The notes under the pieces are model-generated. The model saw nothing but the letters and a program-made list of their open reading frames with translations. It did no database searches and was not told the DNA's origin. Positions 6,601 to 15,600 of a stretch of 64,000 bases of DNA are shown here, piece by piece. The translations under genes were made by a program, and so were the position numbers. Source of the DNA: Magallana gigas (taxonomy: Eukaryota); NCBI RefSeq assembly GCF_963853765.1, contig NC_088858.1, positions 2,170,001 to 2,234,000 of the forward strand, read 5' to 3'. Position 1 is the stretch's first letter. Each line of letters begins with the position of its first letter.

Positions 6601-9600
6601 ATCGTTGATAGTGAAGCCATGAGTGTCCATTAAATGCGCTGTTTGCTCTACATTTCTTTGGCATTCTAATTCTGTTTTGCTTATTAAAAGCGAATCGTCT
6701 ATCTAGGCCACATTAGCATGTCCGTGTTTTCTAAAAGAAGCGAACACGGGTTTTAACAGTTTCGTGAATATTTGTGGAGCTGATGCCAATCCCATGGCCA
6801 AACATGTGTATTGGAGCTACTTGCCTTTCCAATAAAATCTCAAATATTTTCTGTCATCCTGACACACATTGTACGAATAATAAGCGTTGTGGTGAATTCG
6901 GAACTTATGTGTCCGGTTTGGTTTGTTTTTTATTGAGTTCATCCGGTGTTTACATGTGCTCGAGGCACTTTTGCCCAACTCATTTTTGATGTACATTTAC
7001 GCACTACGGAGTAAGTATTTTGTTTAGCATTGTACAAAACATTTAATTACACCCAGATAACCAATTTGCTTTAATGTAATTCTGCTTTCATCCCTTTAGA
7101 TGTCAGTTCATCTTCGCTAGGTTTATCAAAACATGTGTAAGGCATAATGTAAAACATGGAAATTTAGGAACATTGTTAATTACATGCTATTTAGTCACAC
7201 TAGCAGAATGTTACAGTTAATATCCTATATGTTCTTACAGGTTTTAACTGTTATTATCAATCTGAGTTGTGTATAAGCCCTAAACCTTTCCACGATAACA
7301 TTTTCTTTATTTGGCACAGTGTGAAAAATATATTGGACTTGACATGGTACAATTTTCTGTAATTTGTATTTGTACTTTTGCAGTTTTTACCCTCACTGGA
7401 GGAGCAATAAACACTTAACTCAAGTAGAAGTTTTAGTTGTTTAACGGCACAGTAAAAATCCGTAAACCGGTAAGATTGGTCATCAAGATGAGTCTGCGGT
7501 CGGAACCAACCAGGAGAAGCACACGTATGAGGAACCTGACAACACCAGCACAGGAAACTTACGAAGCTCGAGTGGACACCTTTCAAAGAAGGCTAAACAG
7601 TATTAAGAGTGAGTGGAGGGAGTGTTTTGAAGAAATAGAGAGATCAAGCAGGGATATTAAAACTCTGAAATCTATTGACGATCTTCTTGTGAAAGGCTTC
7701 GAAACGTATCAAAAAACATCCAATGCATTTTGTGATTTCTTGAGAACTGTACGCACAGAACAGAGCGCTAATGAACTTGCATCTCATCTCCTAATTAAAG
7801 AGACTTTGTTAGGAAAAATCAACGTAGGAAGAAGCAAAATTGAATATTTGATTTCAGAGGGATCATTCAAATCGCTGACTCAGCGATCACTTTCATCTGG
7901 CTACAGTAAATCTTCAAGCCGATCCATAGGATCTATACTGTTAAGGAAAGAAGCAAAACTAAAAGCCCAGCGCACAATGTTGAAACATTTAGATGAGGAA
8001 CTAGTGCTCGAGGCTCAACTAAAACGTCTGAAGGCCCAGCGAGAAATGAAGATGGTAGAGAGCGAGCTTAGTGTTCTTAAAGAGGACCCACGTTTACAAG
8101 AGCTTGCGCCGAGTCTCTCGAGTGAGTCAAAAACTGAAGAATACTTGAAGCTTCTCCCAAGGTACGAGCAGGATCGCAAGCAGCATGAAAATGCCATAGA
8201 GACATCCCAGTCCAACAGCTTTAGTGATTGGAGACAAAAGGAGGATGCAGTTGTATCAACACCGAAACAGTCTTCCACTTCCCCTCCTATAGCAACTGCT
8301 TATGTCCAAGAAGAGACACCACAATTACACACACTGAGGCCGTTCGACGACACACCTAAGACTCAGCTGAACCCCGAAGTACAACCCTTCACTCCGAGAC
8401 AGACGGAAGTAACTCAGCAGAGTCAGATGATCATGATAGACACATTTACTAAGCATTTAGTAAAAAAGGACATCATCATGTCAAGGCTGTCAAAATTTGA
8501 CGACGATCCGATAATGTACGTCTCATGGAAAAAGGGATTTATTAACATTATGGAAGAACTCGGAGCTTCGGAAACAGAAAGACTAGAATTATTATGTGAA
8601 AAACTCGGACCTGAGTCTTCAAGACAAGCTAGAACTATAAGAGCCTGCAATGCAGACAGTCCAAACATCGCAATTAAGAAAATCTGGGAGGGACTGGAGA
8701 GACGCTTTGGAGCGGCGGAACAGATCGAGAACTACATCCTGAAGAAAAAATTAAAGAATTCCCAGAGATTTCGTCGGATCACTTTCATCTGCTCCACGAC
8801 CTGGCAGACCTAGCATCCGAGATTGCATCATTAAAGGCACAACCTCAGTTTGAAGTCTTATTCAGCTACTTTGACTCAAAGAAAGGTGTTAACGAACTTG
8901 TGCAAAAACTTCCATGGAATCTGAAGGACAAGTGGACTTCAGAAGCAACAAAACAGAAGCAAAGTATGGGAGTGGCATATCCACCCTTTTCAGTCTTCGT
9001 TAAGTTTCTGGAAAACATGGCAGAAATGAAGAATGACCCTGCATTCCAGTATGAGAAGAAAGGGGGCAAGAAACAACAAACTTTTTCGACTCAGCAACCG
9101 AAACAGTTTAGTAGGAATGCAGTGAACAGGACTTTACCATTAACCAGAGTAGCTGCTAGAAAGACCGAGACAATCACAACTTTGGAAGTGACGGACATGT
9201 GTCCACTACACAAGAACAGTTCACATTCCCTTAACGACTGTATGTCCTTCCGCCAAAAGGCAATAGGAGATCGTAAGAAAATGATCCTAACTAATGGAAT
9301 ATGTTTTAAGTGTTGCAGTGGCAAGAAACATAGGGCTAAGAACTGTAAAGCAGATGTGAAATGCAGTGTGTGTCAAACATCGTTACATCCGACGGCTCTT
9401 CATGAAGAACCATCTGAGGCACAAGATTCTGGACGATATGCGGTGAAGAACAGAGAGGGGAACCCTTATGAAGGAGAGAACAGACCCATTGTCTCTTCAG
9501 CCTGTACAAAGGTACATGGAGCAAGTAAATCTTGTGCAAAGATAGTACCTGTTCGAATAAGTATTATTTCCAATCCACGGAAGTCGATGCTGGTTTATGC

Positions 9601-12600
9601 GATTATCGACGACCAGAGCAATCGGTCACTGGCTACCTCATCGATCTTTGACTACTTCCAGGATGATGGCGATGATGTCTCTTACACATTAGTTTCCTGC
9701 TCTGGAACAGTTTCAGCAACTGGAAGATTCGGTACTGGTTACACAGTGGAGTCTGTAGATGGTACATGTCAGTTAGAGTTCCCAGAACTGATAGAGTGTA
9801 ATGACTTACCTAGTAATAGGGAGGAGATCCCTTCACGAGAGGTCGCCTTGCAGTACTCCCATTTGAATTGTATCGCATCTGAAGTTCCCCCGCTTTTTGA
9901 AGCAGCAAATATAGAACTTTTAATAGGGAGAGATCTTATCAGTGCACACATAGTTCACGAGCAGATAGTCGGAGAGAAAGATGAACCCTTCGCACAGAGA
10001 CTTGCTTTAGGATGGGTCATTGTCGGTCAAATTTGTCTTGGTGGAGCCCACCGACCCGAAGTCAGGACCTTCAAAACATTCGCATTGAAGAATGGCAGAC
10101 CCTCAACCTTTGAACCCTGCAACAGTGAGTTGTTGGTCAACGACAACCTGTTCCAGAAGACCGAACATGATGAGAAGATAGGATTCTCGATAGAAGACAG
10201 AATTCCTGAAATTGATGAACACATCATTCGAGAGAGATGACAGTGGCCATTGGGTGGCTCCCCTTCCATTTAAGCAGAACCGACTACGTCTACCAGACAA
10301 CAAGACCCAAGCACTACAGCGTGCAAGAGCATTTGACAAGAACCTCGTCAGAACTCTAGAAAGTACGAGCATGTCAAGGAGTTCATGATAAAATTGTTCA
10401 ATAGAGGACATGCAGAGAAGGCACCTATGCTCGAAGATGGAATAGAGAGATGGTATCTACCAATGTTTGGTGTGTATCACCCTAAAAAACCAGAATCCAT
10501 TAGAGTGGTATTTGACTCATCCGCTCGTTTTGAAGGAGTGTCCTTGAATGGTTCACTGATGAAAGGGCCAGATCTGTCTAACAGCTTGCAAGGAGTACTT
10601 ATGAGATTCCGGTTAGATCAATATGCAGTGATAGCGGAAGTGGAGCAGATGTTCCATAATTTCCGAGTGAGAGAAGACCACCGAGACTACCTTCGTTTTT
10701 TGTGGCATCCTAACCATGACTTAGACGCTCCACTGGAGGAATTTAGGATGACAGTACATGTATTTGGGAACAGCCCTAGTCCTTCAGTTGCTACGTTTGG
10801 ATTGAGACAATCTGTCTCGACTGCAGACCCGGAAGTTCAACATTTCGTATCCCGTAACTTTTATGTTGACGACGGGCTGATGAGCTTCAGTGATATACCT
10901 CAAGCGGTGGACCTTATCAAGCATACACAAGAGGCTCTCTATGAAGGAGGACGCTTACGTCTACACAAAATCGCATCAAACTCTGTCGAAGTTTTGCAAC
11001 ATTTTGAAGCAGAAGATCTCAGCAAAGACCTACATGGGCTTGATATTATGCAAGACAACTTACCAGAGCATAGAAGCCTGGGAATTGCATGGAACATTGA
11101 AGACGACACGTTTATCTTTAGGGTGAGCAAAGACCCCAAGCCCTTCACACGACGAGGTGTCTTATCAGTCATAAACAGTCTCTTTGATCCCATTGGATTT
11201 ACAGCCCCAGTGACAGTGGTAGTACACAAGAGGCTCTCTATGAAGGAGGACGCTTACGTCTACACAAAATCGCATCAAACTCTGTCGAAGTTTTGCAACA
11301 CTTGGAAGCAGAAGATCTCAGCAAAGACCTACATGGGCTTGATATTATGCAAGACAACTTACCAGAGCATAGAAGCCTGGGAATTGCATGGAACATTGAA
11401 GACGACACGTTTATCTTTAGGGTGAGCAAAGATCCCAAGCCCTTCACACGACGAGGTGTCTTATCAGTCATAAACAGTCTCTTTGATCCCATTGGATTTA
11501 CAGCCCCAGTGACAGTGGTAGGGAAGATGCTTTTAAGGGAGGCAATGACCACGAAGTGCGACTGGGACGACATACTCCCGGTCAGTTTTCAGACAGACTG
11601 GGAAAGTTGGGTAGACTCACTTCATGCTCTAGATAGGATTCATATACCCCGCATGTATTGCCCACTTTCTGTAGGAAAGGCGTTACACCTAGAAGTTCAC
11701 ATATTTTCCGATGCATCTAAAGAAGCAGTGGCTGCTGTAGCATACTTGAAAGCTTTCCACCAAAAACACTCCGAGGTAGGATTTCTTCTCGGCAAAGCAA
11801 AGGTTGCCCCTTCGCATGGGCACACCATCCCAAGACTTGAACTATGTGCTTCAGTCTTAGCTGTAGAGATGGCTGAGACTATCCGAGAAGAACTACAAAT
11901 TCCTAAGGACAACTTCACCTTTTACACAGACAGCCAAGTCGTCTTGGGATACATCTCTAACGATGCTAAAAGGTTCCATGTGTATGTGTCTAACAGGGTG
12001 AGCAGAATTCGTTCATTTTGTGAACCAGGACGCTGGAGATACATCATGTCTGAACAGAATCCTGCTGATGTTGCGAGCCGGGGTTGCAGCACACGGGAGT
12101 TGCCTCAAAGCACTTGGCTTTCGGGACCGGATTTCTTGAGGGATGACACGTAACTTGGAGATCAACCTCAAACCTATGACCTTGTTAATCCAGACATGGA
12201 CGAAGAAGTTCGCAAACAGGTGACTTGTAAGAAAACCTTCATTGCATCTCAGGGATCTGAATCGTCACAGCCGGGAAACTTGTCTACATGGTGTGAGCGG
12301 TTTAAGAAATTCTCAACATGGATGAGTTTAGTCCGTGCCATTGTGTGCCTCAAACGATTTGTGGCTAGAACCCGCTGTAAAAAATCAAATCCAGTAGCTC
12401 TGAAAGAAGATGCTGAACGATTTATCATTACACAGGCTCAAAACGACAGATATCCGTCAGAGATTCATGCAATCAAAAGCGGAAAACACCCACCACTTAA
12501 CAGTCACTTAATCTCCCTCAATCCAGTACTAGAAAAAAATGGGATCCTGCGAGTAGGAGGTCGAACTAAACACATGAAGGCTACTCACCTGACCACTCAA

Positions 12601-15600
12601 CCTATCATTATCCCTAAGGATCACCATATTGCCACATTGTTAGTACGTCACTACCATGCAGAAATTCATCACCAGGGTTGACACATGACAGAAGGAGCAG
12701 TCAGAGGCGCAGGTTTCTGGATTGTTGGATTCCGTCGGCTCGTGAACTCTCTGATTAGATCATGCATTATGTGCAAAAAACTGCGTGGGAATCTAGGATG
12801 GACAAAGATGACGGACCTACCGTTGGACAGAATTGAGCCTGGACCTCCTTTCAGCTTTGTTGGAGTCGACGCATTCGGACCTTGGCCAGTTGTTGTAAAG
12901 AAGACTACTAGAGGTGTCAGGACTACATCCAAGTATTGGGCCATTCTTTTCACCTGTCTTGTGTCGAGAGCCATACACATAGAGCTTGTGGGAGATATGA
13001 GTAGTGAAGCTTTTATCAATGCCCTGAGAAGATTCATGGCCATTCGTGGCCCCGTGCGCAAGTTTCGTTCAGATAGGGGCACAAACTTCATTGGGGCGAT
13101 GAAGGAGTTAGGGATAAGTGCGTCATTCGATGAAAGTGGAGTAGTACAAGATTACATGACAAAGGTTTGATCTACATGGATCTTTAATCCACCATATGCA
13201 CATCACTTTGGGGGCGCCTGGGAACGTCTTATAGGATCCTGCCGTCGTATTTTGGATGCCCTGCTGTTGGAGAACAGACCTAAAGACTTAACATTTGATG
13301 TTCTTAGCACCTTTATGAGTGAAGTTAGCGCCATTATGAATACTTGTCCACTGTTGCCTATCTCTAGCGATCCAGAAGCTCCATCGGTTCTCTCCCCATC
13401 CATGATCCTGACGCAGAAAGAATGCGACCTTACCTCATCAATGAACATAACAGGATTTGGACCTAAAGATGCTATGAAAAGTCAGTGGAAATTGGTTCAA
13501 AAATTGGCTGATGACTTCTGGCATAGATGGCAACTCGAATACATCCACTGCCTGCAAACTCGCAGAAAATGGCAACTGCCAGGAGCGACCTTTAAGGTTG
13601 GTGACGTAGTTTTAGTCAAGGACGACAATTCTCATCGTAACACTTGGCCCGTTGGTATTATTAAGGAAGTGTTCCCAAGCAAAGATGACATCATTCGGAA
13701 AGTCATGGTCACCGTTGTCCGTGATGATGTTCGAAACTCATATGTGAGACCTATTACAGAACTTATCCACTTACTTGACTGTGAATGATGTAGTTATGAA
13801 CTGATTGTGGATGCTGTTATGATTGCATACAACTCCTTTCATAAAGTAGTCAAACCTGCAATGATTGTTTTAGTCAATGCTTAAAACAAGACATGTTCAT
13901 GTTATGTATGGATTTTTTCATGTAACTACTTTTTTTTATTTGATTTGGCGATTTTTCATAAACTCGGAAGGGGAGTGTGGTGAATTCGGAACTTATGTGT
14001 CCGGTTTGGTTTGTTTTTTATTGAGTTCATCCGGTGTTTACATGTGCTCGAGGCACTTTTGCCCAACTCATTTTTGATGTACATTTACGCACTACGGAGT
14101 AAGTATTTTGTTTAGCATTCTACAAAACATTTAATTACACCCAGATAACCAATTTGCTTTAATGTAATTCTGCTGTCATCCCTTTAGATGTCAGTTCATC
14201 TTCGCTAGGTTTATCAAAACATGTGTAAGGCATAATGTAAAACATGGAAATTTTGGAACATTGTTAATTACATGCTATTTAGTCACACTAGCAGAATGTT
14301 ACAGTTAATATCCTATATGTTCTTACAGGTTTTAACTGTTATTATCAATCTGAGTTGTGTATAAGCCCTAAACCTTTCCACGATAACATTTTCTTTATTT
14401 GGCACAGTGTGAAAAATAGATTGGACTTGACATGGTACAATTTTCTGTAACTTGTACTTTTGCAGTTTTTACCCTCACTGGAGGAGCAATAAACACTTAA
14501 CTCAAGTAGAAGTTTTAGTTGTTTAACGGCACAAGCGTCTTGTAAATCAATTGACGCAAAATTACAATTCTTTGATACTAAGTTGATTGCGGACGACAAC
14601 GTTTCCAATGGTGATATTCCATAAAGTCATTCAAGTGTTTTAAGTTTAGTATTACTCTCAACTTCCATTTTTTCTTTGGTCTGACGAAGATATTTGAAAT
14701 AAATTCGTTTTTGTTATGATCTGACACTACTTCAATAGTTTTCGTGGATTGAAGTTCTTTGATTTCAATATCAATGATTTCTAAATCAATTTTGTTGAAA
14801 TTAATTGGTTTGGGATTACTGCATTGAAAAAGCGTATTTGAAATTCAATTGAATAACCTCTTCTTGTTTTTTTAACTAGTAAATTTTTTAATCACTTGAA
14901 ATCATTTTCCAATTTTCATAATGACCGGCAATTTTCCCCGCCGTTTTTTGACGCAGCTCAAATTTTTTGAGGTATTTAGAAACTCACCCACATTTCTGAA
15001 GATAACACTTCCTGATTTACTTCTTCGTCAGCTTGTTGTTTGTGTGCATTTTCTTTTTATAGCCATGGAAAGTGCGCTGGCTTATGTATGTTGGTCTGGT
15101 TGTCGGGTCTTTGACCTTGGTATTTCCGACTTGGCAAGCTCCGCTTGTCGGCTCTGATGCTGCTACCCGAGATTCAACCATATTTGCTCCCCGAATAGTT
15201 TGTCAGTGACGGGATAATCGTGTGAACAAAACATCTGGAATTAGCCGTTACTCTCGGGTTGGATGATGAACTCTCGTCTTCTTTGTAATAGATCACAGTA
15301 GACGTACGTCATTGATTTAAGACTGTCCATTGCCAGGGTGGTGAGGCCCTTCATTGACGGACCCTCTCCCTGTTGCTTTAATTGATCCGCTGCAGTTGAG
15401 GCACAATTGCATTGGCTACCAGAGTCTGAGTATGTTGAAGTTTAATGTCTTGATTTTGGATTCGTCGACTGAGGTGGGCGCGAACTACATTTAGATGGCG
15501 ACTTATTAAGCACATTTCGTGGTCGATTATACCTCTCGCTCACTTTCTTGATCTTTTCAGCATTGAGCAGTGCACGCCATTGCTAGTTACTTTGACCATT

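Follow-up and report, generated by a model that had tools for sequence, protein, structure and literature searches.

The element and its split complement

The window analysed here is a stretch of 64,000 nucleotides (nt) from the oyster Magallana gigas (assembly GCF_963853765.1, contig NC_088858.1, positions 2,170,001 to 2,234,000), and positions below are counted from its first letter. At 6888–14533 it contains a 7.65-kb BEL/Pao long terminal repeat (LTR) retrotransposon, which lies on the forward strand together with all its parts described below. The element is flanked by a 5-bp target-site duplication, AGCGT (6883–6887 and 14534–14538, placed by alignment of the LTR edges), and has a 5' LTR of 564 nt (6888–7451, TGTGG...GGCACA) and a 3' LTR at 13976–14533. 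The two LTRs are approximately 99% identical, with six substitutions and one 6-nt indel between them. A gag open reading frame (ORF) of 441 amino acids (7488–8813) has its start codon 36 nt past the LTR, and pol follows as several ORFs in this copy (8900–13788). The sequence immediately downstream of the 5' LTR, where a primer for reverse transcription would anneal, is complementary to a splice junction within the LTR itself. This suggests that the element probably primes its own minus-strand DNA synthesis, much as the fission yeast element Tf1 does, with a primer assembled by splicing.

The intron occupies 373 nt of the 5' LTR (7011–7383), with the donor GTAAGT and the acceptor TACTTTTGCAG, and ends in TTTTGCAG. 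Exon 1 ends in TACGGA (7005–7010) and exon 2 begins with TTTTTAC (7384–7390). Joined, these segments form the exact reverse complement of the first 13 nt past the LTR, the primer binding site GTAAAAATCCGTA (7452–7464); the exon 2 half pairs with 7452–7458 and the exon 1 half with 7459–7464, and C7390 faces G7452, the first nucleotide after the LTR (LTR+1). The 13-nt complement is present only once 7010 is joined to 7384. Apart from the GTAAGT at 7011, no match to GTRAGT lies in the approximately 1.4 kb (LTR included) that precede the acceptor. The primer site does not begin with TGG, and this triplet is absent from the first 25 nt past the LTR (which start GTAAAAATCC). An earlier note on this DNA, made from its letters alone, had described the splice signals, the 13-nt complementarity and the position of C7390 opposite G7452, and all of these, together with the bases quoted for them, were confirmed. 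Both halves are also conserved in the 3' LTR, as had been noted; the donor is identical (14093–14098, followed by GT), the first 7 nt of the acceptor exon lie at 14466–14472 and the intron is still present.

RNA evidence for the LTR intron

The search for spliced RNA covered two sets of RNA contigs and a pair of raw poly(A) runs (X21 and X22). In run X2, an oyster metatranscriptome, a 550-nt contig (depth 5.5) consists of 6981–7010 joined to 7384–7903, with the 373 nt between GT and AG skipped; this is the junction that the earlier note had proposed. X2 also has an unspliced branch over 6981–7350 (depth 11.4). The spliced contig passes the LTR end and the primer site and continues into gag, which indicates that a 5' LTR was transcribed, from a start upstream of 6981. 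A search of the reference genome for the joined form, with up to one mismatch allowed, gave no DNA copy. The interval therefore has the properties of a spliceosomal intron: GT..AG ends, a consensus donor, a pyrimidine tract, and a joined form that occurs in RNA and not in genomic DNA. The LTR intron is real, and was seen in a single run, from a library in which carry-over of DNA is possible.

The reads of X21 and X22 span the LTR with its intron, and their depth drops after approximately 7408–7440, past the AATAAA. Loose ends of these reads before 6888 carry the polypurine tract, GGAAGGGGAG, which in the window precedes the 3' LTR (13966–13975). These reads would fit an unspliced, polyadenylated 3' LTR; all pairs have one orientation and their strand is unassignable, and this result is not leaned on. 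A metagenome scan for the joined form gave no match. Among the Logan contigs bearing gag (L081–L083, L089, L090, L091 and L092) there was no further junction, each being unspliced or beginning inside R. One of these, the 3-kb contig L089, comes from an internally deleted copy with 95% identity and has its first base at 7388, 3 nt before the proposed cleavage site and 4 nt after the acceptor; its start could be a transcript end, a template end or an assembly break.

Covariation among oyster BEL families

Four genome copies of the window family retain a 5' LTR with internal region. The window copy and L002 have TTTTTAC after the acceptor and GTAAAAA after the LTR, and L003 and L004 have TTTTCAC and GTGAAAA, a compensatory change at 7388/7454. 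L003 is decayed, with the donor exon reading TAAGGA and the acceptor AG changed to AT.

A gag search of the genome identified approximately 100 relatives at 25–40% identity. Twelve BEL families of the oyster genome, 11 besides the window family, have a common layout with differing but matching sequences. In each, a pyrimidine tract and YAG are followed by 7–9 nt ending in AC; the LTR ends 51–103 nt past the acceptor, and LTR+1 begins with GT and continues as the complement of the 7–9 nt. The CCTC..GAGG hairpin motif follows the 7–9 nt in seven of the families examined, including that of Tegillarca, and AATAAA or ATTAAA lies 14–48 nt past the acceptor in 17/17 families.

The donor was chosen by the single criterion GTRAGT, which gives one or two sites per 1.3 kb. 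In all 11 families (11/11), the exon end at a GTRAGT donor 162–527 nt upstream extends the complement by 3–6 nt; an extension of 3 nt is attained by 1% of the other GT sites and by 9.5% of exon ends exchanged between families. Examples of the donor-half exon ends are TACGGA, AAGGA, AATGGA and TAAACT, and elsewhere AGA, AGT and AGC. Between families, the final base of the exon covaries with its partner as A:T, T:A or C:G. The earlier note's suggestion that related families should preserve the junction–primer site complementarity was thus upheld: compensatory changes occur in both halves, over 18 sequences from at least seven species in two phyla.

Related elements in other species

Contigs encoding relatives in other species were found by protein search. 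Across the elements with this design the introns are 111–767 nt long, with a strong donor and a pyrimidine-YAG acceptor. In the mantis shrimp Oratosquilla oratoria, the LTRs are 100% identical, the donor is CAAACCAT|GTAAGT, the acceptor is TTACAG|TTTTTCAT and the primer site is ATGAAAAAATGGTT, a complement of 14 nt. Here the site starts with AT and the primer ends in AT, the first base of the site and the last base of the primer both being altered. The complement is 11 nt in the Haliotis cracherodii element, 12 nt in those of Mya arenaria and Pecten maximus, and 13 nt in a Logan contig element; in Tegillarca granosa, 9 nt are followed by one mismatch and then by 5 nt. The LTR pairs of the other-species elements are 98.8–100% identical over their full length, intron included. 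Near-identical pairs that keep the intron indicate that new copies inherit it. The earlier note had reasoned that the intron would persist only if U3 were copied from an unspliced 3' LTR, and its retention in both LTRs of young copies is what that reasoning requires.

Extent of pairing and fold of the leader

Pairing was counted from the primer 3' end in 18 sequences: two subfamilies of the window family, 11 further families of the oyster genome and elements of five other species. Positions 1–11 are paired in 18/18, apart from one mismatch at position 10 in Tegillarca. Pairing then falls to 13/18 at position 12, 8/18 at position 13, 7/18 at position 14 and a background level of 1–2/18 at positions 15–16. 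The complement is 11–14 nt in 17/18 sequences, and in the spliced RNA only. The place of the junction varies (after 7, 8 or 9 nt), but the pairing extends to 11 in every case; the unspliced sequence provides 7–9 nt. No TGG occurs at the primer-site position in any of the 18, so that the 3' end of a tRNA cannot pair there.

In minimum free energy (MFE) folds of the spliced leader, all 11 pairs form in 14/17 families. The MFE of the window leader has a z-score of −3.9 against shuffled sequences, and the fold includes a small hairpin directly after the primer (CCTC-ACTG-GAGG, 7391–7402), abutting the proposed cleavage site. The poly(A) signal AATAAA follows at 7406–7411. As expected of Tf1-type self-priming, the element lacks a tRNA site and has an own-leader complement of at least 11 nt at LTR+1 (13 nt in the window). 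The primer does not lie at the very start of the RNA, the contig having at least 30 nt of exon 1 ahead of the junction.

Upstream of the donor, a promoter-like region and short exon 1 (6905–7010, the exon spanning at least 6981–7010) contain a CCGG/ETS-like motif and the palindrome CATGTGCTCGAGGCAC. This is the best-conserved stretch even in L012, a solo LTR that is 72% identical. The LTR starts of many families (L057–L077 and L084–L088) share the CCGG/ETS-like motif (TCCGGTTT, ACCGGAAGT) along with a CATGTGCTC..GAGCAC-type palindrome, 45–75 nt before the donor. These motifs (6905–6975 in the window) probably act as the promoter from which the short exon 1 is transcribed. From the LTR of L012 a primer site GTGAAAGTCCATA would be predicted. 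The earlier note had also suggested that a 7-nt match (CCGGTTT at 6913 with AAACCGG at 7464–7470) might extend the duplex. The match is present, but sister copies read AAACAGT and AGACCGG; since it is unconserved and lies inside the CCGG motif common to LTR starts, it is treated as chance.

Search for a host primer

The 13-mer TACGGATTTTYAC has 61 matches in the genome, against 86 for a reversed control. The window-family members among these are four primer sites, on the opposite strand (two were inspected; context was obtained for 30/61). The inspected matches outside the family primer sites (context as above, 30/61) are unrelated sequence, and were rejected as sources of a host primer. No tRNA was found at 10 tested genomic sites matching the junction sequence or in the window, and Rfam gave no match at 6700–7700. 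The longer host tRNA or small RNA complementarity named in the earlier note as a rival source of the primer was therefore not found among the tested genomic matches, in the window or in Rfam. In addition, primer sites differ between families and track the LTR of their own element, which a host RNA cannot explain.

Two repeats carrying these sequences were encountered. An interspersed repeat unrelated to the element and lacking LTRs, in three copies (L047:2503, L048:2573 and L049:2566; C1:29.63 Mb, C2:49.16 Mb and C3:60.70 Mb), carries GTRAAAATCCGTAGAC, 16 nt identical to the L003 primer site. This match is probably chance; alternatively, the two may be a common target of some small RNA. The 13-mer TACGGATTTTYAC also recurs every 20–30 kb in large tandem gene-sized units unrelated to the element (C4:52.4–53.4 Mb, C1:25.07–25.11 Mb and C6:55.44–55.55 Mb), and there is no tRNA in the copies tested.

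Proposed mechanism and alternatives

A complement that starts exactly at LTR+1 is the signature of a minus-strand primer. The matches of the donor half are hard to explain without pairing of the spliced RNA at the primer site; such matches would also be expected from plus-strand synthesis in which the primer is copied back into this site. Self-priming by a spliced LTR RNA, as the earlier note had proposed, is supported by the RNA junction and by the covariation, and the later steps, cleavage and priming, are set out here as a model.

Transcription would start within the first 100 nt or so of the LTR. The spliceosome would excise the 373-nt intra-LTR intron, joining TACGGA to TTTTTAC at the start of an R-like segment. 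The 13-nt junction would then fold back onto the sequence at LTR+1, or act on it in trans from a second RNA such as a short spliced LTR transcript. By analogy with Tf1, RNase H would cut after C7390, which would become the primer 3' end, on an RNA ending ...TACGGAUUUUUAC. Extension of this end over 7451–7391 would give a strong-stop DNA of 61 nt, and this could transfer to the matching stretch of approximately 40 nt before the 3' poly(A) site, with 7391 to approximately 7430 serving as the repeat. Copying of an unspliced 3' LTR would return the intron to the new LTRs. The 3' intron might be spared because the 5' donor is close to the cap and the 3' donor has a 6.7-kb exon upstream of it, although this is a guess. 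More broadly, it seems reasonably likely, if somewhat less so than self-priming in the window element itself, that a large clade of marine-invertebrate BEL/Pao elements (in bivalves, gastropods and a stomatopod) has exchanged tRNA priming for a splice-dependent primer, with reverse transcription licensed by splicing and the 3' LTR left unspliced.

Several points weigh against self-priming by a spliced RNA. Cleavage and priming are inferred. The RNA support is one assembled contig from one run, and the X2 library also holds an unspliced flank contig with an uninterrupted target site, consistent with possible DNA carry-over. The raw poly(A) runs X21 and X22 contained no junction read; at 9 and 31 reads they were too small to show one, and they count neither way. 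The donor half contributes just 3 nt in about half of the families, and in family F4 and the elements from outside the oyster the donor chosen was the best-matching one, though in all but F4 it was also a perfect GTRAGT. Because exon 1 measures at least 30 nt, the primer does not form the 5' terminus of the RNA as it does in Tf1, and plus-strand synthesis would have to cope with the 5' tail. Finally, the element of Patella vulgata (L086:2348–2690), which has an open frame of 2000 amino acids and LTRs of 324 nt, has a 9-nt match past TTTACAG with no donor partner. Splicing is therefore not universal in the clade, and the Patella element may represent a form of this system that lacks the intron and resembles Tf1.

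The Patella element would also be accommodated if priming were of the plain Tf1 type throughout, without splicing. The RNA would then start at or near 7384, the pyrimidine-YAG would be the U3/R border, the first 7–9 nt would prime, and the exon and intron would be unrelated to priming. The 7–9 nt past the acceptor do always pair from LTR+1, CAGT/TCAGT resembles an initiator motif, AATAAA 14–48 nt downstream would leave a normal short R, and the Logan contig L089 begins at 7388. This account does not explain why, in 17/18 sequences, the complement is continued by the exon end found at the only strong donor, when other GT sites do so in 1%, and why pairing always extends to 11 nt wherever the junction falls. 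Moreover, there is no TATA box 30 nt upstream, and the site has a full pyrimidine tract, a branch-point consensus in some families and acceptor use in RNA. We regard unspliced self-priming as unlikely, although it is the chief competing account and the Patella element and L089 lend it some weight.

Alternatively, the helix between junction and primer site could be a regulatory structure of the leader, which masks the primer site or the start of gag, or partitions RNA between translation and packaging, while a host RNA primes. The helix does lie 24 nt ahead of the gag AUG (36 nt if counted from the first base of the helix), and in the fold other pairings of the leader extend as far as the start codon. 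A regulatory helix has no need to start exactly at LTR+1, as the complementarity does in every family and as a primer must. Variation of the primer sites between families leaves no single host RNA that fits, and the missing TGG and the negative tRNA and Rfam searches described above also count against a host primer; a purely regulatory role is accordingly very improbable. An accidental inverted match, arising in an LTR rich in AT, is more remote still. When any GT...AG pair of the window LTR was allowed, a split complement of at least 13 nt was obtained for 5.6e-4 of 124,808 control 20-mers from the window. Because the donor is the sole strong GTRAGT and the junction was observed in RNA, the real probability is orders of magnitude below this. 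The recurrence of the arrangement, with other sequences, in 17 further sequences, the RNA junction and the compensatory change within the family refute chance, to which we attach practically no weight.

Other features of the element and its copies

The pol region encodes the Pfam domains Peptidase_A17, rve and DUF5641 (PF05380 at 7e-46, PF18701 at 1e-26, and PF00665 under Pfam's cut-off). The Pao-type protease, integrase core and C-terminal DUF5641 place the element in BEL/Pao, as do the paired TG..CA LTRs, the short target duplication and the polypurine tract. It lacks the 18-nt tRNA-complementary primer site listed in the profile of the virus-taxonomy committee ICTV, which is a trait of described BEL/Pao members, whereas the family itself is defined by protein phylogeny. 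The Tf1/sushi clade is defined by a Ty3/gypsy chromovirus pol phylogeny, and the element falls outside it, its pol domains being of Pao type.

A tandem duplication of 299 nt (99% identical, 10924–11521) lies at the start of the Pao protease region. This and several frame breaks indicate that the window copy is defective. A contig of RNA run X2 joins the left flank (6602–6887) directly to the sequence that follows the 3' LTR (CTTGTAAATCAAT...), an empty target site. The flank is approximately 8% divergent, so the insertion is missing from that animal or sister species. Some LTR copies are interrupted at approximately 7191–7193 by other sequence (AAAGGTCATATGAAACGAT...), seen as loose ends in runs X22 and X6, and truncated copies of LTR bases 1–243 or 1–304 also exist (L010, L013 and L014).

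Comparison with known systems

To our knowledge, LTR retroelements are primed in three ways: by the 3' end of a host tRNA, by an internal tRNA fragment (copia), or by the contiguous 5' end of their own RNA (Tf1/sushi). If the mechanism proposed here is correct, it adds a further way, in which a primer in two pieces is assembled by splicing, and the replication of a whole lineage depends on the spliceosome. It would also explain why standard tools miss primer sites in many mollusc BEL/Pao elements. It also gives a simple and testable rule, by which the reverse complement of the LTR splice junction gives the first 11–14 internal bases; LTR borders, splice sites and active families could be annotated with its help. 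How one RNA comes to treat two identical introns differently is a question that it raises. No description of BEL/Pao self-priming, spliced LTRs or LTR introns was found in the literature searched, most subscription journals lying outside the search. The novel part, for which no prior description was found, is a noncontiguous primer written by splicing, in a family without known self-priming.

In Tf1, the first 11 nt of the transcript form an uninterrupted self-primer, with a minimum duplex of 11 bp (Levin and co-workers). Like Tf1, the oyster element has no tRNA primer site, and a stretch of its 5' leader is complementary to the bases that directly follow the 5' LTR; the minimum duplex of 11 bp, the small hairpin beside the primer and the RNase H cut that creates the 3' end (here proposed) are also shared. 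Unlike in Tf1, the complement is missing from the DNA and from the unspliced RNA, being built from LTR segments 111–767 nt apart. At least 30 nt separate the primer from the 5' end, and the family is BEL/Pao (Belpaoviridae). Self-priming of Tf1 and Tf2, in the Tf1/sushi group of Ty3/gypsy, is mentioned in PMC4600332 and PMC6317226.

With canonical BEL/Pao elements the oyster element shares gag, Pao protease, reverse transcriptase, RNase H, integrase with DUF5641, TG..CA LTRs, a 5-bp duplication and a polypurine tract. According to the ICTV profile, replication of Belpaoviridae is primed by a host tRNA (PMC8742986), a description that the present mechanism, if true, would contradict. The insect BEL/Pao element Achilles has a tRNA-Tyr primer site (PMC4580426). 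The survey of BEL/Pao by de la Chaux and Wagner and the paper on Sinbad do not treat primer sites. Unlike these canonical members, the oyster element has no 18-nt tRNA-complementary site and no TGG, and its site matches its own spliced LTR RNA.

Drosophila copia is primed by an internal fragment of initiator tRNA-Met. As in copia, the primer site lacks an initial TGG, and the primer 3' end would be made by cleavage. The copia primer, however, is host-encoded and one serves all copies, whereas here the site tracks the LTR of each family. Retroviral leaders may also carry a splice donor in or near the LTR, such as the major donor in R of human T-lymphotropic virus 1 (HTLV-1), and splice signals within an LTR-derived leader are thus common to both. 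The retroviral signal is a donor for subgenomic mRNAs, with a distant acceptor, whereas in the oyster element both sites lie in one LTR and their junction matches the primer site.

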